A stretch of DNA of 64,000 bases from contig BFEA01000039.1 in the NCBI GenBank assembly GCA_003427395.1, positions 2,988,602-3,052,601 on the forward strand. Direction: 5' to 3'. Source of the stretch: Chara braunii (lineage: Eukaryota > Plantae > Charophyceae). Every line of letters begins with the position of its first letter. Position 1 is the stretch's first letter. The notes beneath the pieces are model-generated. The model saw only the letters and a list, made by a program, of their open reading frames with translations. It ran no database searches and had not been told where the DNA came from. Of the stretch, positions 3,660 to 64,000 are shown in pieces. The position numbers and the translations under genes are program-made.

Positions 3660-3914
3660 TAGGTTGCACCTCTTATCTCTCCCGCAGTTCTTCTGCTGGT
3701 TGATGAAGAGTTTAACTTTTTTCAGTGAAGGAATTATGCAACTAAGTTGCGTCTGTGCAAGGTTATATCACATAGCGAGATCTTAGTTTTGGAAATGTTT
3801 ATGCAAGAATGACAATGAAAGGAGGTAGCTCCTTGAGATGTCAAACAACGAGCGCTGCATCTCTCGTAGTGTGGAGGATAAAGTTCGAATGAAATGAATG
3901 TTAAATGCTTGCTA

Positions 3915-3915
<1 letters not shown>

Positions 3916-3959
<44 letters not shown>
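3916..3959 (+). repeat. Poly(A) tract
   Basis: About 44 consecutive A. Confidence 0.9.
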
Positions 3960-14124: not shown

Positions 14125-14455
14125 TCATGAATGAAAATTCTGAAGTGAGCGTTTTGGGGAGTCTGAAAATCCTGAATGGTCCTGAAGTGGTGAAAGGTCC
14201 GAAGACCCTGAAAACCACCTGCTTAGGCAAGTTGCATCCTTAAGTGGTGAAGTGAGAGTTTTCGCCAGTCTAAAAAGCCAGAATGGTTCTGAAATGATAA
14301 AAGGCCCGAAGACCCTGAAAACCACATGTTTAGGCAGGTAGCATCCTAAAGTGGTGAAGGGTGTCCTGAAGTGGTGAAAGCTCCGAAAACCCTAAAAACC
14401 AGCTGTTTAGGGAGGCTGCATCCTGAAGTGGTGAAGGGTGTCATGAAGTGGTAAT
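14125..14455. repeat. Short array related to the 81-bp satellite at 21.1-22.6 kb
   Basis: Repeated 'catcctgaagtggtgaa...gaagaccctgaaaacca' shares its core with the 81-bp unit. Confidence 0.65.
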
Positions 14456-18400: not shown

Positions 18401-19908
18401 TTGGTAAAGAAGATTTTGACAATCTGCCCTGTCTGTACAAGAGAGATGCTGCCAAAATTTTTCTTAATCTGATACCATGTATAGATAAGTTAGACTCAGT
18501 CCTATGAGTAGTTGGATGTGATGCGAAATAGGTTTTATTCTCCATTCACTTAAGCATAACTTTGGATACTAACATGTGTTGTGTAACAAGTCATCTTCGC
18601 TCAATTTGATTCAAGGCTTAAATAAGGTTTTGCATGATCTGACAAGGATCATCTTCTATGATTTTTTTATAATATGTAGGTTTTCGACTCAACTCTAACT
18701 CATTCTTGTTATTCAACCTAAGGTCTTTGTCCTTGTGGGTTGAACTGTTTTTTTTTTTTTTTTTACCCATACTTTTATTAAATGTCCATTTAAAAAAGGC
18801 TTAGTGTTTTCTTTTGAAAAGTTTGACAAAGGTTGGGGCTTGTGCGAATAAAGCAAGGAGTATGAGTGCAGAGAGTGGTTGAAGTTAACCCTGTGTTATG
18901 TGGTCTGTGGATGTTAAATTTGCGTATGTGATTGCAAATATGTCTTGTGAGTTGAAGTCCGAAATTGACTTTGTCCACGTCCATTTTTATATTTGGAAGG
19001 AAGTCACACTGTGATTGTGAAAGTAATCGCCTCGAGTTCAATAAAGCTATATTGTTTATATTTTGTGCGTCCGCGCGGTCTATCTCGACTTTGCGTAAGG
19101 ATTGAGCGAATTTGTATTGATAGAAAAAAAAATCCCTTCTATTTTTGCTTCTTAAATATTTTTGATTGGACGTTGAGGTCTGTAGCGCTTGTTAAAGTCA
19201 ACCCCCTTCACCTTGTCCGAGGCCTTTGAAGATGGAGCCCCATTCCATCGATTAACGGTGTTTGCTCGTCACAGAGAGCCAATATCCGTTTATCACTCAT
19301 CTGCGAAATGTGCAGAACAGGTAAGGTATCGCAATTGCACATGAGATTATTTAGTGTCAAAAGATTAACCTCTTAAGACGCGTATAAGTCGATACTTGAG
19401 TGTCGAAAGTGAGCCTCAAAACTATTGAGGACCTCGTGATTATGAGTACCGCATAATACGCCATCATTGAGACCACTTAAGTGTTTATGTATAGCTAGTC
19501 GATGTGTCACCGTGATATTTATTCACAGTCTCCCGCACAACACTCCCTTATTTATGTCGTCATAAGGTTATATGTCGGATGTGAAAAATAAACTATGCGT
19601 GATTTATGATGAAGCATGATTTTATTTTGTGAAGTATATCGCGTGGTTAGACTAACCATCCTGGTCGACCTGCATAAAGCCGCGCTTGGGACATCAGCCC
19701 TAGGAATGTCGGTTCCCGAGGGTTCGATTAAGGCGTTCGACCGCTCGTACCCCCTATGCTACAGCGAACGAGAAACGCCCTTGGTTGGGTCACCTTTGCG
19801 ATTGCACTCGAGCAATTTTTGTATGTGGTTCCATAGCTCCACGGGGATACGCATGTCCAAGGGTGGTGACAACCCCCTAGGCAGAGGTAATTTGTTCCTC
19901 GTGCGACC

Positions 19909-20167
19909 TTTATCCTGTCGTAGGGGTTCAAAAGAGGTAGTTTGGCGTACTCAGCCAGAGCGACAAAAACTCCCTTGCGAAATACGTCTTGCAAAATCAT
20001 GCATGATGTGGCCTGGAAGGTCCTCATGCGGGGCTGATTTATCCTGTCGTAGGGGTTCAGAAGAGGTAGTTTGGTGTACTAAGCCAGAGCCACAAAAACT
20101 CCATTGCGAAAAACGTCTTGCAAAATCATGCATGATGTGGCTGGGAGGGTCCTCATGCGGGGCTGAT
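19909..20167. repeat. 129-bp tandem duplication inside a ~650-bp insertion in the Gypsy RNase H region
   Basis: 'tttatcctgtcgtaggggttca' at 19909 and 20038. Confidence 0.85.
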
Positions 20168-21129
20168 GCGCTGGACAACGCACAAAAAACTCTATTGTTA
20201 TGACTTTCCTCGCAAAAGTCTGATTTTTTCCTCGACGAGTACAATGGTGGCGAGACTTATCTGATCTAAGTTTCGCTATTGAGCCTATCAAAGGTGAAAC
20301 GAACCGAGTTGCAGACGCCTTGTCCTACTGTCCTTACCATAATCAGGCCCCTATGAAGCTCGCTGGTATCTCGATCACCACCATTGATGATTCGGTGACG
20401 GTTGCGTTTCGTACTTAGTACCGCCACTACCCAGATTATCACGACATCTACACGACATTGCAACGAGATAAAACCGTTCCTTCATACTTTATCGGTACGA
20501 ACCGTCTTCGGTACTGATATGACAACGGTGGTCGTTGAGAATCACGTGTATGTGTACTTGCACTAAACAACACCGTGTTCAGACTACAACATAGTTTTAT
20601 AACTAGACAATCATCAGTCAGATGGGCTTCCGAAGGACCGTAGAACTCGTTTGTCGTCTATACGTTTAACGACAACGCAATGAATTCGTCCAAAGCTACA
20701 TTTTGAGTGTCCTATTTGTCAGGAGGTGAATATTGCAAACCGCTTTCCGTATGGATTACCCCAGCCTTTACCTATACCTGAGAATCAATCACATTGACAT
20801 TCCATCTCTATCGACTTTGTTGGTCCTCTCGACCTTCCACTGAGCGAGATCATGATATTATCTTCGTCGTTGTTGATCACTTCACTAAGCACACACACTT
20901 CATCCCGTGGCGTTATCGCATCAGCGCTAATGAGGTAGCCGAGATTGTTTCGAGTGAGTCGTGAGAGATCGCGGCCAATCCCAAAACATCACCTTTTACA
21001 TTGATTCGTGCTTTACCAACACTTTTTCACAACGAGAGAATGTTAACAACATATATAGTTTTCATCATACATATATTATATATGCAACTTACTCCCACTT
21101 TTTTTTTATTGTTCATGTTCTTCACACTC

Positions 21130-22565
21130 TTATCTTGAATTGTCATCACTCATTTGAAACGTTGAGTTTTTTTCATCATCCATGTTGTTCTCATCATAAA
21201 TGTTGTTCGACTTCTCCAAACAGGTGGTAACAGGGGTTGCTTTCAAGACCTTCAGGATGTTCATCACTTGAGGATGTTTCATCGTTTTTATGTAACTTGA
21301 ATAAATGACTATAAGAACTTGAAACGTTGAGTTTTTTTCATCATCCATGTTGTTCTCATCATAAATGTTGTTCGACTTGTCCAAACAGATAGTCATAGGG
21401 GTTGCTTTCAGGACCTTGAGGACGTTCATCACTTCAGGATGTTTCATCGTTTTCACGTTTGAATAGTTGACAATAAGAGTTGTTTTCATGGTCTTGAGGA
21501 TGTTCATCACTTCATGATGTTTCATGATTTTCAAGCAATTTGAACAGATGGTCATAAGGATTGTTTTCATGGTCTTCATGACGTTCATCACTTCAGTTTT
21601 TTTTAAATTTCTTTAAAGGTAGCTTGAACAAATGACCATAAGGGTTGTTTTCATGGTCTTCAGGATGTTCACCACTTCATGATATTTCATAATTTTTATG
21701 TAGCTTGAACAAATGACCATAAGGGTTGCTTTCATAATCGTCAGAACCTTCATCACTTAAGGATGATTCATGATGTTTACGTAGCTTATCAGGTAGTTCT
21801 ACGGGGTGTTTTTTCGGTCTTCACGATGTTCATCATTTCGGGATGATTCATAATTTTCAAGTGGCATAACAAGTGGTCATAGGGGTTGCTTTCGTTGTCT
21901 TCGGAACGTTCACCACTTCGGGATATTTCATGATTTTCAGGTAGCTTGCGTAAGTGAGCATAAGGGTTGCTTTCATGGTCTTGAAGGTGTTCATCACTTC
22001 GGGGTGTTTCATGATTTTCAGGTAGCTTGAACAAAATATCCCTAATCATCCTTAAGTGATGAACGTCCTTAAGACTATTGAAACAACCTTTATGACCATT
22101 AATTAAAGCTATCTGAAAAATGAAATATCCCGAAGTGATGAACGTCCTTAAGACAATGAAAACAACATTTATGATCATCTGTTCAAACTACCTGAAAATC
22201 ATTAAACAGCCTGAAGTGATGAACATCATGAAGAACATGAAAACAACCCTTATTGCGATCTGTTCAAGCTATTCGAAAATGATGAAACATCCTGAAGTGA
22301 TGAACGCGATAAATACCATGAATCAACTTTTATGACCATTTGTTCAAACTACCTGAAAAACATGAAACATCCTGAAGTGATGAATGTCTTGAAGACCCTG
22401 AAAGCAACCTTTATGACTACATGTTTGGGCAAACCATAAGGGTTGCTTTCATTGTCTTTATGATGTTCATCACTTCAGGATGTTTCATGATTTTTAAATA
22501 GCTTGAGCAGATGACCATAAAACTTTCTTTCATAATCTTCAGCACATTCATCACAAAGATCTTCC
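21130..22565. repeat. 81-bp satellite with an internal inversion (about 22045-22420), between integrase core and chromodomain
   Basis: The unit translates as a 27-aa repeat (MKHPEVMNILKTMKTTLM.ICS.YLKI) on the minus strand and switches to the plus strand at about 22045-22420. Confidence 0.9.
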
Positions 22566-23944: not shown

Positions 23945-26900
23945 TTAACATATAAAATGCCCAAAGCGTGCTGCGTCCAACATACCTAGCCAGAAGCTTG
24001 AGTTGGTCCTGCGCTGCATCCACTGCAGCCCAGCAATTACCGCCTTCCTTGGGTAGTTGTTTTTCCTGAGTTCTTCTCTTAGTGTGAGGACGTTACAGCA
24101 TGCAAGCCCATCTGTATTCGAGTTCATCGAGATGCGCAAAATCGTATTGGCAATAATGACGAATTTATCTGTTCGAGGCTCGTATGAAGAAAAATCTTTG
24201 TACGTCCGTAATTGAAGTGGGGTACTGCCCCAGATTGTCCGCGTATTCTTAAACTTATGGGACATCAGCAGTGCCTTATCCCCGCACACCAACAGTCTAG
24301 TTTCAAGGAAGTCCAAAACGCCGGTCCCAGGGTTCGTACGTTCAAGTATCAGTCCTTCGGGATAGCAGTGCGTAACCTTATCAAGCAGCTTCTCGATTCT
24401 AGGTCGCTCGTCCTTTCGAAATAATGCGATGATTAACAGATCGTCAATGTATCGTTTTCCTATAACTTTTTTCTGATCCGCCCCCAGAGACTTCAAGAAC
24501 TGGTTCTCGACAAACATGTACATCACACATGCTAAGGGTGGGCTAGCTCTGCCACCCATAGGAATTCCCTTCTTCTGTCAAAGCACTACATCGGATACAC
24601 TGAAGTAGGTGTTGTCCAATTGGAATTCGGTTAGCGATACTAAAGTCTTTAAACGGATCGATTTCCAACCCGTTTCCCCGTGTGATTTAACAAAACGTGC
24701 CTTTTTTTTTCGAGGGTTCACCCTGATCCATTTGATTGATTTAGCAGAACACCAGTTAACAATCCAGGCTACCGCTTTAAGAATCTCACCATGTGGAAGT
24801 TGCGTGAACATTTCCTTGATATCGTACGTGCGGGCGATAATACCATGTTTTTCATTCACGACTTCGGGTCTTTTGTTAATGATCTCAATTTCCTTTTTCA
24901 GCAACACCATGGAACTCAGGTTGAAATGTGGTTCCTTTATTCTTCGTATCAGTTCATTAAGAGCAGTCGACAGGCAACCTGACGTGACCCTGGATGGAAT
25001 GAGATAGGATGGAACAATAGGCCACTTTTTGCCTTTACCTTTCTCTATGGAAAGGATATATGCATGTTGCACGTCACCGTTGTCATCCCACCTCCCAATT
25101 TGGTGAAGCCTTGTACTCTTATATTCTTTCTCCATTGCGAGTAAAACTTCTTGTTTTGGAGTTGACAGGGTTTCGTAATACTCATTCTCAAGGAACATCT
25201 TCTTTAGGCCTGCCTCGTACGATGTGGGGCATTCCAGCCAGATCTCACTTGTGTTCCGATCCAATGGAGATCTAACCAGGCCATCAAGTGCTTGTTGCAC
25301 CCCTTTTACGTACTCGCTCAGTACACATCCTTCCTGCATTTTTTCTCCCGGTCGCGACATCCGCTGGTAATCAATACGTATCTGCGAGCTAAACAGACCC
25401 ATTGCTCGCAGTCCCTCAAGGGCATCATTGCATGCGACATCGATCGTGTTTCGATTAGCCAGCGACCCAGAAAAGGGGACATTCTTAGTATTAAACAAGA
25501 ACGGATGTACACCAACCACCTCACTGAGTCTTACCACAACATGCCCGTTAATTTTGGGCAGGTCAAAGTCAACACAGACACAACCGAAGTTGGATTGTCG
25601 TGCGTACGACTTGTGGTTATGCAACAAATCCCCGACTGATTTGGCTTTGAGCCAGACTGTCTTGGTTCTTTTTGCATACAATGTACCCAATGCTTGTGGT
25701 CGGATGTTATCTGAGATCCAAACTTTAACTTCGTTTTCAACCTTCCTTTTGTCGATCGTGGTACAAAATGGTAATTTAACAATCACCTTCGCCCGAGGAT
25801 TAACGACATTAGTGAAAACACCGTGAATAATCTGCCTGCCATGATGCTGATTAACGGTTTTTACTGCGTTGTTTAATTCAATCAAATTCGTTTAAATCCC
25901 GCTTATACAAATCCCGACGTTTCCAAGGCGCTCTAAGGAGTGCAATGAGTTTATGCTTCAATAAGTCGGTTTTCGTCTTTGTTCGAATTATATCAATGAT
26001 TCTCATCTCACCGTTTTGCTCAATGGTTTTCTTGGCATCTTTCAACAGCATTCGCACACCACCAATCTCAACTTTGGAAAATCCAAAGAGTATTACAACC
26101 AATCGTCATGCCTTAAGCCATCTCTCCCCTGTGTTATTTGTGATTACTATTCTTTGTTTGATTCTTCGTTTTGCAATTAGTTTTAAAATTTTGAGCAGGT
26201 CCGGTTCGTGATTAATATCAAGCGCAGGACAATCAAAGAAGAGGGGTTAAGTAACAGAAGGCATAAGGCATCGGTCTGGTGGCTTCTTCTGACCACGGGC
26301 TCTTCGTGCATTCTTCCCATGTTTAGTACCACGCGCATTTAAACCAGGATTACAATCGCTAATCACCGTTTGTTCAACAGAATCAATTGTCATCCCGCTT
26401 CCGAACTAGATCGGTATCGGTACGTAGTGCTCAATACCGGCCTTTCACAACCACGCATTAACTTTCTGCTTACTAGTGCCCTTCGTAGCTCTATAGTGTT
26501 CAAGCCATCGTTCCCGTAGTGACCTGGTAGTTTTTCCTAAGTACACGGTCGTATGCAGTAGTGACATGAGCAAATATACACACTCCCGTCCATTGACAAA
26601 CTTCTCCCATTCGCTACTAGGTAGTCTGAGCCAAAATCGAAGATAAGTCCTACCCCACGCAATCTCGTTGCGGAGGCAGGCTAGTAGGATAGTCAAGACA
26701 TGAATTCGATCCAGGAGTATACGCAACGCTCCATCAACCTCGAGCTTCAATCTTGTGATTCTGTTCGCAGCCCGGCGCAATGCCCGAAGTGAACCCCACT
26801 TCAGTTTTCCTTCACCGAGTTATCCAGGCCGGGGTCCTTGTCATCTGTTCCATTGGAGCGGGACGTGGTTGATCGAGATGATTCGGCTCCGCGCGCTGTC

Positions 26901-34469: not shown

Positions 34470-35952
34470 CTAGTACTGAGCAGGGATCCGGTACACAGAG
34501 GAGGGCCAGGACACCGCGCCCTCCGACAGCGCCGGCTTTTCCTCCTTCAGCAAGTTGGCATATTCCTGCAGGTCCAACCTTGCAAGCTCCCAAGCGCCTG
34601 CGTCCTTCCGGAAGTACTGTATATTCTTCTGCTTGCAAAGCTCTTGCACGCGAGTGTATTGCAAGGAGTAGTAGAACTCTTGACGCTGCTTCATGTAAGC
34701 GGCCAACCCTCCTTCATCATCTTCTTCTTCCTCGTCATTGGGTTCATTCTGAACCACATCCACATCTTCGCACCCCTCAGATTCCACACTCGCTTCTCCT
34801 TTGACCGACTTCAGCAGTATGACCGGTGCCTTCCCTTTGGTATTGCCGATTCCTTGTAAGAGTGCCACTAACATTGACTTGATATCCGCCAGTTCGCTGC
34901 TCGTGTCCATCTTTGGCTGAAGATTCTGCTTCACCGTACCACCCTCTTCTTCATCGGACGATACCACGATCCTCTTAGAGCGCGACTTGGTCTTGCTGCT
35001 TGCACTTGTGCGAGACTTCACGTGGTTCAAGCGAGGTGAGTTGGCTACTGGGGTACATTTCCCTCTTCTCTTCCTCTTCTCGTTACTTGTCGGGTCCTTG
35101 CATTCTTTCTCTTGCCGAGCTTTCGCCCCACGCAGGTTGTTGAGTTCTTCCTTCTCAGCTAGCGTCAACTTGGCTTTTTGATCCACCTCCTGGAGCTTCT
35201 CAGTGATTAGTTTCAACGAATCGCCCAGTGTTGCCGTCACCCAAGCTTTCATTTCCTCACTCTTATTAGCGGAACGCACCTTGTTGGTCGAGCGCACTTC
35301 CGATCTGCTACCTTCATCAGGCAGATCCTGATTTCGCAAGCCGCCACGTCGTCCACTAGCGATCTTCTTGCGTGCTTCTTCCACCGCTTTACTCATCTTG
35401 ATATCTTCCAGGATATCCATGTATTCCTTCGTAAAATATGCCCGATTTCCAGGCCCAGGGAAAGCATTCGCAGTCGGGCCCTTTCCGATGCTGCTGCCAT
35501 TCCCAGAGTTGTGTGGAACAACAACTGCTTGCTGATTCGACGATGTTTGATGCACTTGATTGCTCTGCTGCTGATTGCTTGCGGGTTGCGGATTAGGAGG
35601 CTGTCCCCACCACTGCTCGTTCACCGGCCACTGACCCGCATTCTGCCAAGGTGGCATACTCCAGGGGTTCCCAGCCGGGGCAACCGCCTGGTACTGCACT
35701 GGCGCAGGAGGCGCCATGTTCGGGACCGTAGTCTGCCCCATAACGGGCATTCAAGTTGCAGGAGGCGCTTGGAATGTCGAGGTGAACTGAGCCCGGTTCA
35801 TCCCCGGCGGGTATACATCAGTCGCGAGGTTGCTGCTGCTGTACTCGACTGGATTCGCCGCTGGATTCGCGCCATTATTCTCCATCCAATAGCGTCCGCA
35901 GTTAGACTAGCGGCCCCGTCGCCCGCTTGCTTTTCCTCTTCCGCGTCCAGAC
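34470..35952 (-). pseudogene. PLE ORF1-like protein (about 490 aa): RG-rich start, P/Q/N-rich region, coiled coil, basic patch, C-terminal SAP-like helix pair
   Basis: The 426-aa ORF extends upstream through two in-frame stops to ATG 35952 (MSGRGRGK). 'LQYTRVQELCKQKNIQY..K' resembles the SAP/HeH spacing. Confidence 0.65.
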
Positions 35953-36741: not shown

Positions 36742-37884
36742 AGAGAAACAATGGAACTCAAAATGAAGAAGATGACATGAGTTTTACTATCATGGCGAAA
36801 TCAACTTTTCCACGACAACACCCTGATCTTACACGGCCAGGGTTCTCAACCCTTCTACTCATCCGCCACTCAGATTGAGGTAAGAAACTTACTGCGCCTA
36901 CTATCCTAACCCCATACGAGTCTCAAGTGAATTCTGAAACTCAACCAATAATAATAATAATAATGTTTACTGCTCTTAGCAGCCTAGAGAACAGGATTCC
37001 GACTCGATTCATAACTTCGTCAAGCTATAGCGTAACAAATCACTGGTCCATTCGCCAGGTTCCAAATACGCGGTCCTCATTGTAGGATGCTTCCCAGATG
37101 CAAGTCAGTAAATCCCGCTCGGGATCTCAAAATTTTTTACTTCTTTTGTCCGACAGACCAACTCTGTTCATATGAAAGTCACGCCTTTGTGATTACGTCA
37201 ATTTTTGCGTATTTATAGAAGGTCTGACGAACTTGTTTTCCCGTATATTGTCTGTACTTAGTCTTGAAAGGGCACCAAGTGCAGTGCCTCCGAAAATCGC
37301 CAAATCGTGCTTGGTATATCACCATCACAGGATCAAAATCTCTCACTGCTTTACCCGATATGACTCGGCGCCAGACTCCGACAAATTTGAGCATGCCCCC
37401 TCTCCCCGCGCCGTTACTTTCGGCGTGAGGACTCGTTTCCCATTTCCGACTATACTGGGGCGCAAATGGCCCCCAAGTCCATTAACGTATAAAATGCCCA
37501 AAGCGTGCTATGTCCAACATACCTTGCCAAAAGCTTGAGTTGGTCCTGCGCTGCATCCACTTCAGCGCAGCAATTACCGATTTCTCTAGGTAGTTGTTTT
37601 TCTTGAGTTCTTTGCTCAGTGTGAGGACGTTACAACATGCAAGCCCGTTTGTATTCGAGTTCTGCGAGATGCGCAGAATCGTATTGGCAATAATGACGAA
37701 TTTACCTGTTCGAGGCCCGTATGAAGAAAAGTCTTTGTACGTCCGGAATTGAAGTGGGGTACTGCCCCCAATTGTCCTCACATTCTTACACTTATGGGAC
37801 ATCAGCAGTGCCTTATCTTCGCACACCAACAGTCTAGTTTCAAGGAAGTCCAAAACGCCGGTCCAAGGGTCCGTACGTTGAAGT
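36742..37884 (-). repeat. 5'-truncated tandem PLE copy forming the pseudo-LTR
   Basis: Closely matches 23176-24347; encodes the same RT C-terminus (DFLETRLLVC...ARFGHFI). Confidence 0.92.
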
Positions 37885-38486
37885 TTCCCTTCAGTGCCTT
37901 GTGTGTCGCATAATGGTTCTCCCCTAGCTAGTTTCCTCTGGGTTGCGCTCTCCCTTAGTAGCGAGTAGGCATTGGGACCATAGCGTTATCCTAGTTTCCC
38001 TTCTTCGACTTTGATGAGTTGTGTGCATATTTCCCTTACCCATTGCATTTATCACATAGTTTCGGCCACTTCGTGCGTTTAGTTAGACATATCATCCTAT
38101 TCCTGGTTCCCTCTTCATGGTAGACTATATATAATGTCACCATTGGTTTTGTTTTGTTACCTTCCTCCCACTAGCACCGCGAGCCTGACGACCTATTCAC
38201 TTGTTTGTGGTGACTACCCCTAGCAGTTTTTTATTCTTAGACTGCATTTACCCCTTTTGACACCATCCCAGTCTCAGTTGTTTAACGACACGACATTATG
38301 TTTTGACACATTGCTATCTTTTATTTTCAGCACTGAGATAGTTGCCTTCAACACCTAAGGATTATATTATGGCACATTTGTTTTCAACACTTAGGCAGTT
38401 GGTATCTCTTATTTTCAACACTGAGGCAGTTACCTTTAACACTTTAGGCTGCATCGCATGGACCCCCCATGGAGCTTGCTCCGTAT

Positions 38487-52088: not shown

Positions 52089-53625
52089 AGCCGTGTGTGT
52101 GTGTCTCACACAAACACAGACACGCAATCCCTGCAATTTTTTTTTTTTTTTTGTTCTTAACTCAAATCATTCATATCGTTCCCAACATGGGATCGAGGGC
52201 GGGGACCTCACAAATATGACCTGGGGTATCTGACCGTAACAGTTAGCTTAGCTTACAGGAACATGCATGCGGAGAGGAACTATTATCCTCTTTCCAAATT
52301 CCAATAGCTTACCTGAGCAGCTTCTGTCCGAGTGTGTGCTTGGTTGATTGATTGATTGCAGAAATGCAAACAACCAACCAATCAATCAACCAATCAAGTG
52401 TGTGCGTGTGTGCATATGCGTGTGTGTGCGTGTGTGCATATGCGTGGATCAATCAATCAATCAACCAACCAACCAATCAACCAATCATGTGTGTGCATGT
52501 ACATGGATTGAATGCATGCGCACACAATGAACGTGGGCAACCTCGGGCAAAGGTGCTTCTTGACCCTTGACAGTTTTGGGAACACTTTTCGATGTGTGGC
52601 TGTGTGTGTCTGTGACTTTGTCTGTGTGTGCTTGCGTGTGTCTATGCCAATGTACGCGTGTGTCTGTGTGTGTGTTTGTGTATGTGTGTCTGTGTGTGTC
52701 TAACTGCATGCGTCTGTCTGTGTGCAAACACGACTGGCACAGGCGATAGTGATTAAATTTGAATGTCTGTGTGTGTGCGTCCGTGTCTGTGTGCGCGTGG
52801 TTGTTTGTGTCTGTGTGTGTGCCTGTGTGTGTGTGTGGCAGGCATGTGGAGAAAGAGAGAGAGAAAGTGTGTGTGTATGTGTCCGTGTGTGTGACATGTG
52901 GATTATGTTTTTGTGTGTGTGCGACAAGTGGATTGTGTGTGTGTGCGGTTAAAGAGTTTAGAGGGAGAAGGGATGGCGTGCACCCATCCACCAACCAATC
53001 AATGTATTGGTTGATTGACATCTAACCAATCAATCAATCAATCAGTCACACATGTATGTTGTCGATGTGCGTGGACAACAAACATTTCGAATGTATGGGG
53101 GTCACAACACTCCACATAGATCTTTACTCTCTCTTTCCCCCGCTCTCATTCTTTCTCTCTCTCTTTCAGTTTAATTATGAACTTGCGTTCTGACTAAGAA
53201 TTCAAGATGTCCGTGAGATAAAAGTTGTTTGTGCAAAGATTATTTACAAGGATTCAACTATTTCCAAGATTTAAGAGACTCTCCAAACCAATTTTGACGT
53301 TATAGTCCTATATGTCAGAATTCACTAGGACCGTTTGNTGGANTGATTGGTTGAAAGAATGATTGATTGATTGGCATGCAATCAATCAATCAATCAACCA
53401 ATCAACCAATCATGTGCGTCCGTATGTCCATTAGCAACCAATTTTGAAGTTCTAGGCCTTTATGCCAGAATTCACTAGGACCGTTTGATGGACTGTTTGG
53501 TTAATCTCTTAATTGATTGATTGACAATCAATCAATCAATCAATCAACCAATGATGTGTATTCGTATGTGCATTAGCGTGTCTATGCGTGTGTGCATGTG
53601 CGTGGATTGAATGCATGTGAGTCAA

Positions 53626-53680
<55 letters not shown>

Positions 53681-56600
53681 GCTGTGTGTGTGTGTCTTAC
53701 ACAAACACAGACACGCACTTTTTGTTGTTTTTTTGAAACTCAAAGCATTCAAATCGTTCCCAACAGAAGATCGAGGGCGGGGACCTCGCAATTCAACCCG
53801 GGTTATCTGACAGTATCAACCAGCTTAGCTTACAGCCACAGGCCTGCGGAGAAGAACTCTTATCCTCTTTCTAAATTTCAATAGCTTACCTGAGCAGCTT
53901 ATGTCCAAGTGTGTGCTTGGTTGGTTGATTGATTGCAGGCATGCAACCGACCAACCAATCAATCAACCAATCAAGTGTGTGCGTGTGGGTATATGAGTGT
54001 GTGTACGTGTGTGCAAATGCGTGGATCAATCAATCAATCAACCAACCAACCAATCAACCAATCATGTGTGTGCATGTGCATGGATTGAATGCATGCGCAC
54101 ACAATGAACGTAGGCAACCTCGGACAAAGGTGCTTCTTGGCCCTTAACAGTTTTGGGAACACTTTTCGATGTGTGGTTGTGTGTGTCTGTGACTTTGTTT
54201 GTATGTGCTTGCGTGTGTCTATGCCAATGTACGTGAGTGTCTGTGTGTGTGTCTAACTGCATATGTTTGTCTGTGTGTAAACACGACTGGCGCAGGCGAA
54301 AGTGATTAAATTCGTTTGTCTGTGTGTGCGTCTGTGTCTGTTTGTGTGTGGGTGTTTGTGTCTGTGTGTGTGTCTGTGTGTGTGTGTGGCAGGCAAGGCA
54401 AAGGTGCATGCAGGCCTTAAACACTTTTGGGACCACTTTCAGGCCTCTGTCTTTATGTGTTTGTCTGTTTGTCTGTGTGTCTGTGTTTGTGTGTGTGGCT
54501 GTCTGTGTGTGCGCGGTTGTGTGTGTCTGTCTGTGTGTATGTGTACCTGTGTGTGTGTGTGTGTGTGTGTGTCTGTGTCTGTGTGTATCTGTGTGTGTGT
54601 GTGTGTGTGTGTGTTTCTGTGTGCGTGTGTGTGTGTATGTGTGTGTGTGTGTATCTGTGTATGTGTGTGCATCTGTGTGCGTGTGTGTGTATACCTGTGT
54701 GTGGTTGTGTGCGTCTGTGCCTGTGTGTTTGGTTGTGTGTGTGTGGTTGTGTCTGTCTGTGTGTGTTTAACTGTATCCTTCTGTGCGTGTGTCTGTGTGT
54801 AAACTCGACTGGCACAGACGAAAGTGATTATAGGCCTATAACAGTTATGGGGAATGTTTGTGTGTGTGTGCTTGTGTTAGTCTGTGCCAATGTACACACT
54901 CAAAGACACACACACGGAAATAGACACAAACACACAAAAATACATGCTCATGAAAACACGGGCACGGGCTGAGTCTGTGTTCGTGTGTGGTACACAAAAA
55001 ACATACAAACACGGACACAGACTGTGTCAGTGTGTCCGTATGTGTCTGTGTGCGTGTGGCAGGCAAGGCAAAGGTGCATGCAGGCCTTAAACACTTTTGG
55101 GACCACTTTCAGACCTCTGTCTTTATGTGTTTGTCTCTGTGTCTGTGTTTGTGTGTGTGGCTGTCTGTGTGTGCGCGGTTGTGTGTGTTTGTCTGTGTGT
55201 ATGTGTACTTGTGTGTGCTTGTGTGTGTGTGTGTGTGTGTGTCTGTGTCTGTGTGTATCTGTGTGTGTGTGTGTGTGTGTGTGTTTCTGTGTTCGTGTGT
55301 GTGTGTGTGTATCTATGTGTGTGTGTATCTGTGTGCGTGCGTGTGTGTGTGTGTATCTGTGTGTGGTTGTGTGCATCTGTGCCTGTGTGTTTGGTTGTGT
55401 GTGTGTGGTTGTGTCTGTCTGTGTGTGTCTAACTGTGTCCTTCTGTGCGTGTGTCTGTGTGTAAACTTGACTGGCACAGACGAAAGTGATTATAGGCCTA
55501 TAACAGTTATGGGGAATGTTACTTTGTGTGTGTGTGCTTGTGTTGTTAGTCTGTGCCAGTGTACACACTCAAAGACACACACACGGAAATAGACGCAAAC
55601 ACACAGAAACACATGCTCATGAAAACACGGGCACGGGTTGAGTCTGTGTTCGTGTGTGGTACACAAAAAACATACAAACACGGACACGGACTGTGTCAGT
55701 GTGACCGTATGTGTCTGTGTGCGTGTGTCGTTGAATGCGTCTGTGTGTGTATGTGTCTGTGTTCGTGTCCGTGTGCGTGTCTGTGTGCGTGTGTCGTTGT
55801 GTGTGTTTGTATCCGTGTGTCTGTGTGTGTCTAACTGTGTCCTTGTGTGCGTGTGTCTGTGTACGAACACGACTGGCGCAGGCGGAAGTGATCAAAGGCC
55901 TCTAATAGTTCTGGGGAAATTTTTTGACACTTGAAGCCAGTGTCTTTATGTCTGTGTGTTTGTGTGTGTCTGTGTGTGTCTGTGTGCCTGCGTTCTTGTG
56001 TGTGTGTCTCTCTGTTTGTGTGTGTGTCTGTGTCTGCGTGTCTGTGTTTGCGTACTTGAGGCTGGTGGATCTAACCAATCAATCAATCAACCAATCAACC
56101 AATCATGTGTGTGTTTCTGCACATCCGTGTGCGTGCGTGTGTGCATGTGGTGAGTTTTTTTTTTCCTTCTTTTTTCCCTTTCTTTCTAAGGGCGAAGACC
56201 TCAAACACAGACCACAAACACTTGTCGTTAGCTCATCGTCCGTAACACAAAGACCCTAACACAAAGACCGAGACATGCCAGTAGTTGTGCCGCCCTTTCT
56301 CATCGTCCCCCACCCTTCACCGAGAAGCAGCAGAGGCTTTGGCCAAGACTCTCCCACACACCATACATAACCCACTCCCGCTCACACTCACACCCGTGTT
56401 GGTCATAGACCCCGCTAATCACAATCCGTTGGCCATGTTCAGCAACTAGGTTAAAACCAAGATCTTCGGAAACTAATTTTCAGGACTGAACATCAATTTT
56501 GAGTTCACAAAAATACCCTTAGCAAAAAGAATATGTTATTTTAAGTAAGAATACAATCAACTTGTGACAGGGAGGTACGCCGGTTCAGTAGAAAACAATA

Positions 56601-57060
56601 TGTTCGCTCAGGTTTGAGAGAATATGTCCTGGAACATGTTTGAGCGTTCGGAAAACCCCCGAATACGTTTATCTGTGTCTATGTGCGCGTGGTTGTTCGT
56701 GTCTATGTGTGTGCCTGTGTGTGAGTGTGGCAGGCAAGGCAAACGTGTTTTGGGACCACTTTCAGGTCTCTGTCTGTATATGTTTTTGTGTGACTGTGTT
56801 TGTGTGTGTGGCTGTCTGTGTGTGCGCAGTTGTGTGTGTGTATCTGTGTGTATGTATACCTGTGTGTGCGTGTGTCTGTCTGTTCTTGTGTGTGTGGTTT
56901 TGTGCGTCTGTGCCTGTGTGTGTGTGGTTGTGTGTATTTGGTTGTGTGTATGTGGTTGTGTCTGTCTGTGTGTGTCTCACTTTGTCCTTGTGTGTGTGTG
57001 TTTGTCTGTTAACTCGACTGACACAGACGGAAGTGATTAAAGACCTTTAGTGATTATAGG
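49727..57060. repeat. Compound (TCAA)n/(TG)n/(CT)n satellite with higher-order ~1.6-kb and ~670-bp duplications
   Basis: 'aagaattcaagatg' near 51585 and 53196; 'ggcaggcaaggcaaaggtgcatgcagg' near 54388 and 55058. Contains gap 50996-51075. Confidence 0.9.
49938..49975. other. Nextera mate-pair junction adapter (library artefact)
   Basis: Exact CTGTCTCTTATACACATCT + AGATGTGTATAAGAGACAG (inverted Tn5 mosaic ends). Confidence 0.98.
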
Positions 57061-57095
57061 CCTATAACACTGTTTTGTTAGCCCGAGACACCTTT

Positions 57096-57097
<2 letters not shown>

Positions 57098-57160
<63 letters not shown>
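57098..57160. repeat. (GA)n microsatellite
   Basis: Direct reading. Confidence 0.95.
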
Positions 57161-57164
<4 letters not shown>

Positions 57165-57934
57165 TCGCCCACCCAAAGGTAAGTGAACAAGAACTCACGA
57201 ACGAAAATGAGAGGGTTATGAGAAACAACCTTTAGAATAAAAAATAGAGGGTTATCAAAATTAACCTTTAGAAAAAGAGAAAAGTCTGACAGAAGAACTA
57301 AACCAAATCCGACAAAAGAAGTAAACCAGAGATGGTCCACTAAGTCACTCCACGTGTAAACTAAAGTACCACAATGCACCGAAAACTACCACACCTATGG
57401 CGAGTGCCCCTGGGTGGACCTCCCCAGGCCTCGTTCACAGTAATGATGACACTCTCAAAATTGTCAACGAAACGCATGGTTCCCAGTACAACGGAACACA
57501 TGGTTCCCAGTAATGATGACACTCTCAAAATTGTCGACCTATTGCGGTCTGATCCACGAACCGAGTGCGCCTGGTTCCCACTTCCACGACCTAAAAGGGA
57601 AAGAGCTAGCCCAGTCTACGCAATGACAATTCTGCAAAAAAATGAAGCCATGTGCCCTCGTTCCTCTAAATGGCTACAATACACAACGGAACACATGGTT
57701 CCCACTTCCACCACCTAAAAAACAGAAAGCTAGCCTACTCTACACAATAACAATTCTGCGGAAAACGACCATGTGCCAAACCACATAGCTCCAACCACGA
57801 AGGGACAACGATCAATCTTGGGAGAGGCATCCAGGCAAAGCAACACACATTCCGACAACGCAGGGGCGACGATCAATCCCAGGAGGGATGCGGACAAAGC
57901 AGCACACACCAGGGGAGTCTCGTATACGAATACG

Positions 57935-58228
57935 GCTTGGTTTCTCTTCTCGCACCAATTGCGAGAGGCGCAATCCTTGCTACATGGACCATTGTCGATC
58001 CTGCTTCGGCTCTTTGACCGGAACGCACCAAGCAAATCATTATTCGACATCAACGAATGGCAACTCCAAGACCACAAACCACAGGAATCCACACAGGAGA
58101 CTCGTGAACGAATAAAGCTTGGTTTCTCCTCTCGCACCAATTGCGAGAGGCGCAATCCTTGCTACATGGATCGTTGTCGATCCTGCTTCGGCTCTTTGAC
58201 CGGAATGTACCAAGCAAATCATTATTCG
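57935..58228. repeat. Direct duplication (about 110 bp, offset about 182)
   Basis: 'gcttggtttctc.tctcgcaccaattgcgagaggcgcaatcc' near 57935 and 58117. Confidence 0.85.
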
Positions 58229-58369
58229 TCGCAAAAAAAGGGCAGTTTCTGGACCTTTTGTCATTGTCTCGGGCGATCCGTGGTTTGAGGTTACTCATGG
58301 TGAAAAGAACAAGCGGAAGGAGAAGAAGCGACCGAGACGGGATAGTCGGCAGAACACCAACGCGACTTG

Positions 58370-58540
58370 AGGCCACACATGCAATATAGGCCTATATGTA
58401 AAGCGCGTATCCACACATGCAATGTAGGCCTAAATTGCATGTGTGGTTTGAGGCCACACATGCAATATAGGCCTATATTGAAAGTGCGTGTCCCCACATG
58501 ACATATAGGCCTATATCCAAAGGATACAGTGTGGCCTAAG
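58370..58540. repeat. Cluster of TATAGGCCTATA palindromes downstream of the ParB-MTase gene
   Basis: ATATAGGCCTATAT near 58384, 58465 and 58503, plus variants, at roughly 39-40-bp spacing. Confidence 0.85.
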
Positions 58541-61500
58541 TCACTTCGCAGTCCGTGAGCGAGTATTGGCCTTGAGGCCAATCGCTACCCCACCATGTGG
58601 ACTCGACACCTCTTCACCGCCTGCCTTTCGTTTGCGCCCCTTCCTGCCGCCAGCCGTGGTCCTGCTCGATTCCTGGCTCATGGCGAGGCTCAAGACACTC
58701 TGCTGAGCATTTGCAGCAGCGGGAACAGGCCCGGATGCAGGTTGCGGCTCAGCCTCTGGTCTAGCTTCAGGAATAACGCTGGGCTCAGGCATGGAAGCAG
58801 GCACGGGTCTACCCTCACCGGGAAGAGAATGAAACCGGGCTCAACACCGGTAACAGTTTGCTCCACACCGGACGGGCCGGCAGCAGCCTCGGCAGCGGGC
58901 AAACTCGCACCTGACGGCCCGACAATGACAGCCTCAGCGTTGTCCGCCACTCCAGCAGCAGTGCCTGTGTTTTCATCGGGCACGAGTTCATTTCCGGCAG
59001 ACTTCGTATCCCCAGACAACTTAGAGGTTGGGCTGCCTTGTGCGACCTTTTTTTTCCGCTTAGGCGTTTCGCGCGCAAGTGTGTCGTCGATGTCTATCAG
59101 AAGCCTCGTGGCGATGCCCTTAGCGCATTTGGTGTTTATCTCCACCACAAGGCAATTCCGATTTGCCTTGACGCACGCTATGGCGCCTGTGTTGGAACCG
59201 GAGAAACCATCCAGAACGCAGGCCCCTGCGGGAGAGAATTTGTTCACAAGCCAGGAGTACAAAGTATACGGCTTCTGGTACGGGCAGAGAACACCGCCAC
59301 CAGGGTGCTGGCACTTCTGCGTCACAGCATTGAAGAGCTGGAAATTGTGATGCATATCAAAATTGTAATGCGCCATCTGGCGCTGCCCACTTTCACTGTA
59401 GTAGCCGAGCACGCAGAATTTGGTCGCACTCACAAACTGCGGCCCACCCGGATTCGTCATATTAGGCTTGCACCACGTCAAAAGCTCCTGCCCTGCATTG
59501 CAAACCTCCCGGAACGCGGAACGGATGAAAGGAAGCATGCCCACGGAACAGAATCCCGCAACTGTCCATAACGGGACACTGGAAACGTCCTTCAGATTGT
59601 GAAGAACCTCCACAACGTCCGACTTCAGAAACGACTCATTATCAGATGCGTGGCCCTCGTGCGCGTAAGGGAAGTTGAAAATAGCCAGAGATATCGGCAA
59701 CTTTTCTGTTTGCAGCTTCGACAACAAGCGCATGTCGCCATTGATAATTTTCATTTCCGCCGAGTCGTTGTCGTGTGCCACCTCCGTCCACTCGACGAAC
59801 GGTTCCACGAGAGGTTTCGTACGGAACGCGTGAATAGTGTTCTTCGCTTGCAGTCTCCTCTCTTTGTTCTTCCATTCAATGGCCCGTTTAATATGGCCAT
59901 CCAGTGCGGGGATACTCGTCTGACCCCTTCTGATGCCACCAACAAACTTTTCCAAAATCTCTTTCTTTGTGTGGAGAGGATACTCCTTTTCGGCGTCCTT
60001 GAAGTCAGCAGCGCCCACCCCCACTGCGAATGCCTTGCAGACGTAGGTGATTTGCTTGACAAGTTGGAACTTCTTCTCCATCTCCTTGAGCGAGATCCGC
60101 TTCGCAATGACCTCAAGGAGGATAGGGACGGCGTTCTCTGGAGCCATACTACCCATGGCTATCCAGTGTTGCGCTGGCATGTCCTCGGCGACCATGGGGA
60201 CCTTGTTACCCTGCAGTTGCACCCGTGGATAAAGAAGCGCCATGTCTTGTTCCTTCGCAGCCGCCCTATCAAGCCTCTTCCCACGCTGGCTTTTCTTCGC
60301 GCCCTTGGACTCGCTCGTTTCCAGATCCTAGTCCGCTTTCAAGAAACTCCTCGCAGCCGGCTTCAGTTTTTGGCCTTTGACCTCGCCCTTCTGCCACATG
60401 CTCATGATCTTACACATGAGCTCCCAAATCTCTGGGGGTTTGAAAGCACACTGCAGCAACGGGTCTTGGGCGTTCAATTTCTTCGCCGCGTTCGGAATCC
60501 TTGCTTCTTTCAGGCAAGCGAGCTTCACTTCTTGCGACTTGACGCACCCCCTGCTCTCAAAGACTTGGTGCCAGCACCTGAGCTTCTCGATGAAGCTCAA
60601 GTCCCTGTGGTAACCCGCCGCAAGGTTATGCCTGTGGGCAACCTGCCTCGCCTCATCGATTGTGAGGCCAACGTAAACAGAGCACACATTGTACTGGTAC
60701 TCCTCGTTGTCGGGGTTCATGCGTGCTAACCGCTCCCTCGCTTCCTGACTGTGGCGACCACTAAGCACAAAAATGCCGTAGTCGACGGCTCTCAGTTTCG
60801 TCAAGCTCACGTCTTCTTTGTGCCCGGCCTGGGCAGGGTCGACGAGGCCAACGAAGGGAAGATGATCTCCAGTTGGCTGCTTCAACATGGAGTCCATGAT
60901 GGACTTCACATGGTCCTCGTCCGACTCTCTCACCTCCATTGGTCTTTTCCCATTCACCAGGGGTGGCATCTTCAAACATCTCATCGGCTAGTAAAAGGAC
61001 TCGTGTGAAAGTTTCTTCTCCTTCAAACTCTTCAACTCCTCCCAAGTTTTTGTCAAATCTTCTGTGCGCTCGTTCGACACGAAACCTTGGGGTACTTGGA
61101 GTTCCTCTTCCCTTCCCTTCCCTTCCCCTCCCCTTGCCCTTCCGGACGAGGCGGACCCGGTGTGACTGTTTTCTTCTCGCGAATCTTCCCGGGAATCGTC
61201 TTTGTGCCCGATCCCCTTTCCAGACTATCGGAAGACCCGACAATGGTTTGAGGAGAAATCACTCCTTTGGGGCGCTGCGACCTCGCTTTCGAGCCACCCT
61301 TCGTGGCCGTCGTCGTCGTCATCGTCGGAGTTTGTGATTTTTCTGCTTCCTCTGCATACTTTAAAGGAATAAGTTTCTCGTCCAAATTTGCCCGTAAGAA
61401 CTCAGAAAGTCCTTCCACGAATGGCTGCGCAACACATTGGAAGCAGAAGAAAAAACAATGGTCGACCAAGTGTGTAAGAGAAACTTATAGGCCTATAGCA

Positions 61501-62707
61501 CATACTTAGAGCAACACTGCGTACGACAAGTGCAATAGAACAACGCAAATGTGAAAAAACATTACAGGCCTGCAACCTCAAAGAGTCGAACTTCTGGAAA
61601 CGAGGAGGACGCAATCAATGTTATAGGCCTATAACTTCCCAGAAACAAGGAAGANGTAGTGGAAGTTACAGGCCTACAACTGTCGGAAACAACATGGAGG
61701 TTATAGGCCTATAACTTTCGGAAAGGCCATGGAGGTTCAGGCTTGTAACTTCCGCGACGTATCCGGTAGTTATAGGCCTATAACTTCCACGGCGTTACCG
61801 GTAGTTATAGGCCTATAACTTCCACGGCGTATCCGGTAGTTGTATGCCTACAACTCTCGGATACGCCGTGAAAGTTTTAGGCCTATTCCTTCCGGTTACG
61901 CCTTCAAAGAAGCGAAATGAAACTTCCAGCTCTGCAACTTCCTGCGAAGAGAGACATGCAGTGGGAATTAGGGGAGATGAGAACATTTACCATGCAATCA
62001 GTCTTGTTTAATGCCAACAATTTCTTGTTTTGGATGGGCATCTTCATGGGCATTAATTTATCCCCCTTCAACAGACATTTAGTGAGCTTGCCCTTGATAA
62101 CGACCCACAACTCCGCGATGAGATATTTTTCCGTCACGTGCGCTGCAAATAAAATTTCGCCGATCCGTGCATAGACACCGTTGCCGCTGGTCTTGACGTG
62201 AAGATAAGCTAATCCAGCTGTGACGTACACGGCCCAAAAGAAGTACTTGAAGTCGCTGCGAACGGGCCTCGACTCGAGGAACTCTCTCTGCCAGCTGCTG
62301 TCCTCCTCCATTGGATCTTCTTCCTCGTCCTCTTCCTCTTCTTCTTCTTCTTCTTCTTCTTATTCTTCNTCTTCNTCTTCTTCTTCTTCTTCTTCTTCTC
62401 CTTCTTCTTCTTCTTCTTCTTCTTCTTCTTCTTCTACTCCTTCCTCTTCCTCTTCCTCTCCCTCTCCTTCCTCTCCCTCTCCTTCCTCTTCCTCTCCTAC
62501 GCCTTCTCCTGCCACAAACTCTCCTTCTTCTAAAACATATTCATCCTCATCTCCTTCTCCCATTTGGGGAAAATTATTCTGCTCCGATGGCCGCCTTTGC
62601 TGCACAACCCCTTCAGAGCACGCCGGCTGCCCCCGAGAAGATACTGTGCCGGTTCTTCTTGCACTCCTCCCCTTGCTCGCACCCCTCCCGCCTCGGGATG
62701 TCTTCAT
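58541..62707 (-). pseudogene. Spliced gene: acidic N-terminus + ParB/Srx-like domain + beta-class N4C/N6A DNA methyltransferase (about 1200 aa reconstructed; three stops, two frameshifts)
   Basis: Exon 62707-61991; phase-0 intron 61990-61425 (ATG|GTAAAT...GCGCAG|CCA); exon 61424 to about 58541. ParB-like 'RESDEDHVKSIMDSM...PFVGLV...IFVLSGRHSQEA'. MTase 'IINGDM...LAIFNFPY...PYQKP..L..WLV..FS..G..VLDGFSGSNTGAIAC...R..LVVEI'. Stops at 62360, 60988 and 60328; ORFs 60328-60984 and 58690-60243 share a frame. Confidence 0.85.
61480..61890. repeat. Intronic array of the 16-bp palindrome GTTATAGGCCTATAAC
   Basis: Perfect copies at 61620, 61700, 61769 and 61804; variants near 61485, 61562, 61665, 61840 and 61875; about 35-bp period in the last part. 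Confidence 0.9.
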
Positions 62708-62789
62708 CGTCACGAATGGACTGCACGCAAAGAGCCATCCAAAACAAATGTCAACCATGGTAAGACTGGTTACAGGGCCCTAGCACCCC

Positions 62790-63126
62790 TGCTTGTTTTG
62801 CCCGTGTGTCTCCGTGCCCGTGTGTGTCTGTGTGTGTCTGTGTGTGTCTCCCTGTGCCCGTGTGTGTCTGTGTGTGTTGCTCTTCGTGTGTGTGTGTGTC
62901 TGTGTGTGCGTCTGTGCCTGTGTGTGCGTCGTTGTTTGTGTCTGTGTGTGTGCCTCTGTGTGTGTGGCAGGCAAGTCAAAGGTGTTTGTCGGCCATAAGC
63001 ACTTTTGGGACCACTTTCAGGCCTTTGTTTTCATGTGTGTCTGTGAGTCTCTGTTTGTGTGTATGGTTGTCTTTGCGTGTGTGTATGTGTGTCTGTGTGC
63101 CTCTGTGTGTGTGGCAGGCGTGTGTT

Positions 63127-63157
<31 letters not shown>

Positions 63158-63755
63158 CTGTGTGTTCTTGTGTGTCTGGTTGTGTGCGTCTGGGGAAACT
63201 GATTGACAATACAAGCCTGTGTCTTTATGTCTGTGTGTGTCTATGTGCGTCTGGGGTAACTGGTTGACAATACAAGCCTGTGTCTTTAGGCGAGAGCGAT
63301 TTAATGCCTGTGTTGGTTCCGGGGAAACTTTTTGACAATACAAGCCTGTTCTTGTGTTCGTGTGTGTGTCTCTGTGCCTGTGTTCTTGTGTGTGTGTCTA
63401 ACAGTGATTTTAGGCCTTTGATTTTCTTGGGGAAACTTTTCAGCACTTCAAGCCTGTGTTTTTGTGTGTGTGTCTGTGTGTGTCTCTGTTTCTGTGTGTG
63501 TGTGTCTATGTTTGAATGTCTGTGTGCCTGTGTTCTTGTGGGTGTGCCTGTGAGTGTATGTTTGTGCATTTGTATGTGTGTGTGCGTGTGTGTCTGTGTG
63601 TGCATGTACTTGTGTTTGAGTGTGTGTGTGCGTGTGTGTGTGTGCGTGTGTATCTGTGTGTGCGTGTACCTGTGTTTGCGTGTGTGTGTGTGCGTGTCTG
63701 TCTGTGTGTGTCTAACTCTGTCCTTGTGTGCGTGTGTCTGTGTGTGAACTCGACT
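62790..63755. repeat. (TG)n-rich satellite of the same family as 54-57 kb
   Basis: Shares 'ggcaggcaag...cacttttgggaccactttcagg' and 'tctaact.tgtccttgtgtgcgtgtgtctg'. Confidence 0.85.
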
Positions 63756-64000
63756 GTGCCGGACCCGCCGGGATGGCGGTCCGTTAGGATGGAGACGAAG
63801 AAGGAGGTAGAGATGGAGCTGGAGGGGACAGCGCAGCTCCGACGCAGACTCCACACGCAAGTACTCCAAGATCTGCGAAAGTGAAGAAAATGACGAAAAA
63901 ACAGACTGCAGCTGGGGTATACCCCCAGCGGACTGACTGGACTGGACTGGACTGGCCTGGTACCGACCGTGGTACCGGGCGGAACTGGACTGGACTGAAA

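Follow-up and report, generated by a model that had tools for sequence, protein, structure and literature searches.

A ParB-methyltransferase gene in Chara braunii

We analyzed a 64,000-nucleotide (nt) stretch of the Chara braunii genome (contig BFEA01000039.1; referred to throughout as the window), in which a minus-strand gene at 58541-62707 joins a ParB-like domain to a domain resembling prokaryote-type N4C/N6A DNA methyltransferases (MTases). On sequence evidence, this gene is cargo of a ~33-kb Sola1-type DNA transposon of C. braunii. An initial annotation, made from the letters alone, had pieced the gene together from an acidic tract, an intron, a ParB-like domain, a linker, an MTase and a basic tail, and six-frame translation of the window recovered all of these pieces at the following positions:

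61991-62707, minus strand: exon 1, with ATG at 62707, a poly-Glu tract and a domain of ~110 amino acids (aa)
62316-62495, minus strand: acidic (poly-Glu) tract of exon 1
61425-61990, minus strand: GT-AG intron, 566 bp, phase 0, with stops in all three frames
61424 to the TGA at 58543-58541, minus strand: exon 2 (six-frame translation)
60991-61424, minus strand: low-complexity start of exon 2, with a 5-bp insertion frameshift near 61120
60331-60987, minus strand: ParB/Srx fold plus helix-turn-helix (HTH)-like region (structural model), preceded by a stop at 60990-60988
~60987-60601, minus strand: ParB/Srx fold (structural model)
~60600-60352, minus strand: helical HTH-like region after the ParB/Srx fold (structural model)
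59788-60327, minus strand: conserved helical linker, with an in-frame stop at 60330-60328 just before it
59089-59787, minus strand: beta-class amino-methyltransferase domain (profile and structural model)
58541-59082, minus strand: low-complexity C-terminal tail with basic patches, a 4-bp deletion near 58827 and the TGA at 58543-58541

The spliced gene model was searched and folded as separate pieces. The ~110-aa domain of exon 1 had no match beyond Chara copies, and the basic patches of the tail read PKRKKK (59064-59047) and RKGRKRK (58645-58625). The donor and acceptor of the intron are kept in close paralogues, and the donor is also kept in a subfamily at 78%. As the initial annotation had noted, the window copy carries stops and frameshifts. 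More specifically, there are three stops (62362-62360, 60990-60988 and 60330-60328), the first of which adjoins N bases and may be an assembly error, together with two frameshifts (+5 near 61120 and -4 near 58827) and two small deletions of 2 and 3 residues in the MTase. This copy is a pseudogene and cannot make protein.

The methyltransferase and ParB-fold domains

Both profile and structure bore out the proposed PF01555-type MTase. The 545-codon piece at 58693-60327 matched PF01555 with an E-value of 1.3e-8 (35.5 bits versus a curated cut-off of 26.7), and the AlphaFold model of the linker plus MTase (predicted local distance difference test [pLDDT], 88) matched CcrM, M1.HpyAVI, M.PvuII and the bdelloid N4CMT in Foldseek, CcrM being the best match (E = 1.8e-12 [CcrM], 1e-9 [N4CMT]). 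On the minus strand, motif IV (NFPY, 59676-59665) lies ahead of YQKP (59280-59269) and motif I (DGFSGSNTG, 59211-59185), which is the beta-class order that had been described. The family consensus reads DFPYGF at motif IV and DGFSGSGTG at motif I; the paralogues have TTCGAC at the former, confirming a CpG transition from DFPY as the origin of NFPY.

Compared with the canonical (D/N/S)PP(Y/F/W), motif IV is variable among homologues at its second position (DPPY, DLPY, DIPY, DAPY), and its D and P, plus W, K and QKP, are near-invariant (54 homologues). The pattern D-x-P-(Y/H/F/W) and the glycines of motif I are retained in very distant homologues, several of which have canonical DPPY. In alignment A3, the first position of motif IV is Asp in nearly all homologues and Ser in none. 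Enzymes producing N4-methylcytosine (4mC) typically have Ser at this position (PMC4738411), and PF01555 enzymes have switched repeatedly between N6-methyladenine (6mA) and 4mC (PMC8885841). Because of the motif IV Asp, the absence of Ser from the aligned homologues and the fixed A/T arms of the palindromes described below, N6-adenine is more likely to be the product than N4-cytosine; of the candidate 4mC/6mA system in the initial annotation, the 6mA part is thus favored and the 4mC part has become less likely. The bdelloid and Marchantia 4mC writers, which are of the SPPY type, are unrelated in context to the Chara family. Many AT-rich metagenomic contigs (L016-L050, L051, L056, L071, L078) were also seen to carry ParB-MTase genes with DIPY or DIPH, broken by short probable introns.

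For the ParB/Srx-like domain, a Pfam search of the gene pieces gave no ParB match, and the assignment stands through structural matches. With the AlphaFold model of 60331-60987 (pLDDT 88), 22 of the top 22 Foldseek matches were Noc, ParB, Spo0J, PadC or KorB (best E = 0.014). Likewise, the top eight VIA rows all had the ParB/Srx fold (Z of 8.7 for PadC, 8.3 for KorB and 6.8 for sulfiredoxin), the ParB part superposing with a root-mean-square deviation of 2.5-2.7 over ~90 residues, and the template modelling score to ParB_N+HTH clusters was ~0.5 over ~195 residues. The ParB box reads SGRHS in the window (60762-60748) and VLGGGHS in the family consensus; family-wide it is GG(N/G)H(S/T), and almost no variation is seen at G, H or an N further downstream. 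The initial annotation had taken GRHS for a defect of the window copy, which proved mistaken: only the change from GGGH to SGRH is copy-specific, and since the whole family lacks the GxxR arginine, its absence is not damage peculiar to the window copy.

A Sola1-type giant transposon as carrier

That the gene travels on a large mobile element had been anticipated, and transposase linkage, a terminal inverted repeat (TIR) and palindromes now identify that element as Sola1-type. Its parts in the window are as follows:

45121-64000, no strand assigned: Sola1-type element from its left end to the window end, continuing past 64000
45121-45148, plus strand: TIR, 5'-AACAAAGGATTCG..., the inverse of the L012 end past the transposase (first base +/-1-2 nt)

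A search with the L010 protein found 10 DUF7869 proteins in Chara, two of which are gene-number neighbors of family members (CBR_g2668/g2669 and CBR_g36567/g36566). In the sister copy (L011/L012), record coordinates put the DUF7869 DDD transposase CBR_g36567 on the other strand from the cargo gene, its start being 10.3 kb upstream of the cargo ATG; the transposase of the window copy would sit past 64000. A DUF7869 gene lies beside the cargo in eight further loci, with five metagenomic loci among the DUF7869-adjacent set. The layout is divergent in L008 (an ENA contig with ~350-bp TIRs), L009 (Riccia), L010 (the closest non-assembly relative), L036 and L037, and other layouts occur in L015, L030 and L065. 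The transposase motifs DGMDQ / LDN..ENKN / GHTH..IDQ.FSCF match those of the Ectocarpus Sola1-1 transposase, as compared by eye with the supplement of the paper describing it.

The left end was placed by comparison with L012, in which a 28-bp end motif ~1.7 kb past the CBR_g36567 stop is identical, when inverted, to window 45121-45148 at 26 of 28 positions, the two ends coming from different copies. The window flank is an unrelated repeat that matches an uninterrupted copy (L012 20480-20529) up to 45119 and then stops. The core AACA-NN-G-R-W-TTCG is also present at the L008 and L010 ends; at L008, a putative 4-bp target site duplication (TSD), CCCT, fits only with a mismatched terminal base. 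Paralogous loci are colinear with the window at 86-94% over 50311-63757, and several kb more are common beyond the window end. The length of ~33 kb joins two copies, with 15.5 kb from the ATG to the transposase-side end and 17.6 kb from the ATG to 45121.

Continuity over 46100-50300 is not proven, given N gaps, an adapter junction and probable nested repeats. N gaps and an assembled mate-pair adapter lie between 47380 and 51075. The latter is of the Nextera/Tn5 mate-pair junction type and consists of a mosaic end and its reverse complement; it is built into the scaffold at 49938-49975 as an assembly artefact, weakening local continuity. The same adapter occurs twice in L003 and once in L005.

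Two other transposase genes were considered and rejected. L003 has a DUF659 (hAT-type) gene at 17977-21770, 6 kb downstream of a divergent family member; a hAT carrier was rejected, as this gene has no window counterpart and an N gap lies between, and it is probably an unrelated neighbor. The L007 DUF7869 gene (3753-5395) was rejected as the cognate transposase and assigned to another element because it is only ~27% like the cognate, is not part of the shared region and has another ParB-like gene facing it. In L007 869-5395, this ParB-like gene of another family is divergent from its own DUF7869 transposase and abuts a truncated copy of the gene family studied here; L007 also has a 2.2-kb insertion at 11963-14173.

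A palindrome confined to the element

The palindrome TATAG-NN-CTATA (consensus GTTATAGGCCTATAAC; GTTATAG-NN-CTATAAC) occurs 17 times in 45121-64000 and not once in the other 45 kb of the window, compared with 0-1 expected by chance. The copies are distributed as follows:

45599-45914, no strand: subterminal region with three palindromes of the variant form TATA-(A/G)-CC-CTATA
51690-57066, no strand: six palindromes scattered over internal repeats (1.6-kb and TG-rich)
58385-58515, no strand: three palindromes just 3' of the stop codon
61486-61817, no strand: five palindromes in a 35-bp array inside the cargo intron

In the sister copy, the same palindrome is found in an intron of the transposase (CBR_g36567) and in its 3' region. 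The two central bases are the most variable and the arms almost invariant, as expected of a site bound by a dimer. A 65%-identical Chara subfamily (L005) has a shifted version of the palindrome. More broadly, an enriched gapped palindrome was found at 12 of 26 ParB-MTase loci versus one marginal case among 14 controls, counts that are not independent since several loci are related; its sequence differs between lineages. In Riccia sorocarpa (L009 3800-22300), two DUF7869 transposases lie 14 kb apart, and each transposase region has its own palindrome, TGTATGCGCGCATACA and the TCCATGA-N-TCATGGA type, respectively.

Family, selection and distribution

The 23 close homologues (44-91% identical) all come from Chara braunii, and the gene is thus eukaryotic rather than a contaminant, as initially proposed. 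More than 30 paralogues were found in Chara, on megabase scaffolds. Relative to its subfamily majority, the window copy has a ratio of nonsynonymous to synonymous substitution rates (dN/dS) of 0.9, i.e., neutral, with CpG transitions making up 14 of its 48 substitutions. Between subfamilies, dN/dS is 0.06-0.22, and for the MTase part compared with L006 it is 0.06-0.09. Since active lineages are constrained and copies decay neutrally after insertion, this is the signature of a transposon gene.

A profile search also recovered the ParB-linker-MTase architecture in Riccia, Ginkgo, Adiantum, the amoeba Clastostelium, several marine animals and metagenomic eukaryotes. In the sea cucumber and hemichordate homologues (P0046, P0051, P0071, P0108), the ParB box is kept, as are QKP and motif I where covered. 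Among naturally intact members are P0026 (789 aa, uninterrupted, with DFPY) and P0174 (981 aa, with DPPY). One Chara gene model, CBR_g41648 (P0024; 1825 aa), contains two divergent ParB-MTase copies in tandem, which suggests nested or adjacent elements of two subfamilies. The proteins of the Chara family showed no SUMO protease.

A putative self-targeting accessory protein and its alternatives

We consider it probable, at roughly 60%, that the gene encodes a self-targeting accessory protein of the Sola1-type element, which would bind the element's own palindromes and methylate DNA there. In an intact element, the DDD transposase and the cargo gene would be transcribed divergently, as judged from the layout of the sister copy, and the spliced protein would enter the nucleus, as its basic patches suggest. 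The ParB-fold plus HTH-like part may then bind the 16-bp parS-like palindrome GTTATAG-NN-CTATAAC, probably as a dimer, and the beta-class MTase would methylate at or near the palindromes, N6-adenine being the likelier target in view of the motif IV Asp. The mark, the bound protein or both might keep promoters or ends open or tag them for the transposase, allowing escape from host silencing by 5-methylcytosine (5mC). This last part of the proposal, that the element gains from anti-silencing or end-tagging, is less secure than any other. More tentatively, and at less than even odds, Sola1 elements of streptophytes and other eukaryotes may in general carry an active adenine MTase whose ParB-HTH part co-evolves with the family palindrome, giving a 6mA licence against silencing.

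Several observations weigh against a self-targeting methyltransferase. (i) Motif IV has F in place of P at its second position in the entire Chara family, and the arginine missing family-wide from the ParB box is the catalytic one of the canonical ParB CTPase clamp (GxxR). (ii) No motif IV was found in the animal homologues checked, which are probably pseudo-enzymes judging by their sequences; binding alone may therefore matter most. (iii) Fourteen of the 26 ParB-MTase loci, many of them short, have no enriched palindrome. (iv) All eight Chara copies compared carry a stop, frameshift or gap; of the intact paralogues under purifying selection to which the initial annotation had looked, the selection was found between subfamilies but no intact full-length copy was. 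(v) In three poly(A) RNA runs (~4.2 Gb) matched against window 58300-62360, 18 reads were found, none at at least 99% identity: no expression of the window copy was seen, and the paralogues gave only trace reads in the sampled RNA. No spliced read crossed the 61991/61424 junction in these runs, and for this reason the intron counts as inferred: its splice sites are well supported by their conservation in paralogues, whereas splicing itself is presumed. (vi) No single copy of the ~33-kb element was read at both ends, and hence no TSD.

The main rival, which we regard as unlikely, retains the same element and cargo and holds that the protein is a DNA-binding or scaffolding factor whose MTase fold binds DNA or S-adenosylmethionine without methyl transfer. 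A ParB-like clamp would organize or bridge the palindromes, aiding synapsis of a 33-kb element or blocking heterochromatin. Such a role would fit the non-canonical DFPY, the animal homologues without motif IV and the position of palindromes near both ends and in introns of both genes, but the retention of D-x-P-(Y/H/F/W) and the motif I glycines in very distant homologues, as well as the strong purifying selection on the MTase part, speaks against it.

A self-targeting MTase might instead be active and produce 4mC, for example in a central GGCC, blocking host 5mC or serving as a mark like that of bdelloids and Marchantia. The repeated switching of PF01555 enzymes, the presence of M.PvuII and N4CMT among the structural matches and the conserved C residues of the palindrome are in its favor, whereas the Ser typical of 4mC enzymes is absent from the homologues in alignment A3 and it is the A/T arms, not the two most variable central bases, that are fixed; we consider this rather improbable.

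It is very unlikely that the gene was host-domesticated or passively captured (Pack-type) with no role in the element, the palindromes being transposase sites only. Subterminal repeats commonly bind transposases and palindromes do lie near both ends, but their clusters are within the cargo gene and close to it, 12-17 kb away from the ends; moreover, the pairing of cargo and transposase recurs in distant eukaryotes, and neutral decay after insertion within a constrained lineage is how a transposon gene evolves. For contamination by bacteria or phage, and likewise for an endogenous virus, the probability is negligible: phage ParB+MTase fusions make up the nearest named Atlas clusters (0.87-0.88, leads only) and PHROG matches exist, but a viral scan gave weak C-terminal MTase matches only, without the ParB part, and the >30 paralogues on megabase scaffolds, intron, CpG decay, TIRs and eukaryotic DDD transposase all speak against it.

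Other features of the window

The remaining large open reading frames (ORFs) of the window had no Pfam match. Broken reverse-transcriptase-like ORFs (KRYIDD) lie at 23948-25891 and 37485-37985 (minus strand) and by appearance are probably Penelope-like; 23948-25885 had no Pfam or PDB match, and a 426-aa ORF at 34470-35750 may be a partner ORF. Rfam at the gathering threshold found nothing, including at a candidate type III hammerhead at 47291-47372. Tandem units of 154 bp and 37 bp with GGCCTTTCGGGCC hairpin-like cores occupy 46150-46400 and 48016-48959, probably as a nested repeat in the left arm of the element. At 21393-22417, two 81-bp tandem arrays of opposite orientation meet at ~22040. 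A short motif starting GGGGACCTCACAATTC is repeated within the element and close to it in either orientation, frequently following poly-A/T (window 46848 and 53804; L001 2100 and 5587; L011 near 2730 and 3478), and is perhaps the end of a small nested retroelement.

Comparison with known systems

The closest known system is Sola1-1_Ec32 of Ectocarpus, a 21.5-kb element whose opposite-strand gene is described, in the excerpts of PMC12477816 used here, as encoding a ParB-like domain and an N4C/N6A MTase; the same excerpts propose that proteins of this type bind to, and modify, the element encoding them. Since Ectocarpus Sola1-1 carries the same type of cargo (PMC12477816), the Chara family is a further member of a kind already described, the activity of which is still a proposal there, and is less new than the initial annotation had implied. 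Both are giant Sola1 elements with a ParB+MTase gene opposite the transposase, AAC termini and the same transposase motifs. The Chara element differs in its ~33-kb length, multiple copies, several subfamilies and acidic exon 1, the cargo proteins being compared by description; as excerpted, the Ectocarpus account reports no palindromes or catalytic motif and calls the gene Ectocarpus-specific (PMC12477816). We found no publication on the ParB-MTase family in Chara or land plants in the literature searched.

Red-algal Plavaka elements encode PAG2 (a PF01555 MTase) and PAG3 (ParB-like), with inverted-repeat arrays beside the ParB gene, and self-targeting has likewise been proposed for them (bioRxiv 2025.02.11.637652). 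As in Chara, a PF01555 MTase and a ParB-like domain are cargo of a giant DNA transposon; in contrast, the Plavaka transposase is of the EnSpm type, and ParB and MTase are on separate proteins, fused to a 2-oxoglutarate (2OG)-oxygenase and a SET domain. Phage ParB-N6_N4_Mtase fusions (ParB-terminase loci; PMC4738411) share the order of ParB followed by a beta-class MTase, and PHROG 67/498 match, whereas the Chara proteins have a long helical linker, a GGxH(S/T) box without Arg, and xxYQKP in place of the phage HPTQKP. Proteins of the HPxQKP type fall on a branch of their own in an unrooted tree, and alignment of the ParB part with one phage-type fusion (hhalign) was not significant; such an alignment and an unrooted tree do not establish a phage fusion as the ancestor.

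The bdelloid N4CMT and Marchantia MpDN4MT1 are likewise beta-class amino-MTases of eukaryotic nuclei, but they are host genes with proven 4mC activity, no ParB and no transposon, Marchantia having TSPPY and N4CMT a chromodomain. VANC is not known to be a methyltransferase or to have the ParB fold, and VANDAL elements are Mutator-like. Like the proposed Chara protein, VANC is a transposon-encoded accessory protein acting on the sequence of its own element, and in Arabidopsis it induces hypomethylation (as cited in bioRxiv 2025.02.11.637652).

Self-binding, self-marking giant transposons have so far been a proposal for brown and red algae. To this, the Chara family adds conserved catalytic residues under strong purifying selection and a sharply defined, element-confined candidate site, together with relatives in Riccia, Ginkgo, Adiantum and metagenomic eukaryotes, many with other palindromes and some with canonical DPPY. 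If active, these proteins would provide the plant lineage with a source of localized 6mA (or 4mC) that does not depend on host enzymes, and would form a natural collection of DNA methyltransferases with sequence targeting; if the 6mA licence holds, they would constitute an epigenetic system of bacterial style that transposons carry in nuclei of the plant lineage, and its predicted target in Chara would be GTTATAG-NN-CTATAAC.

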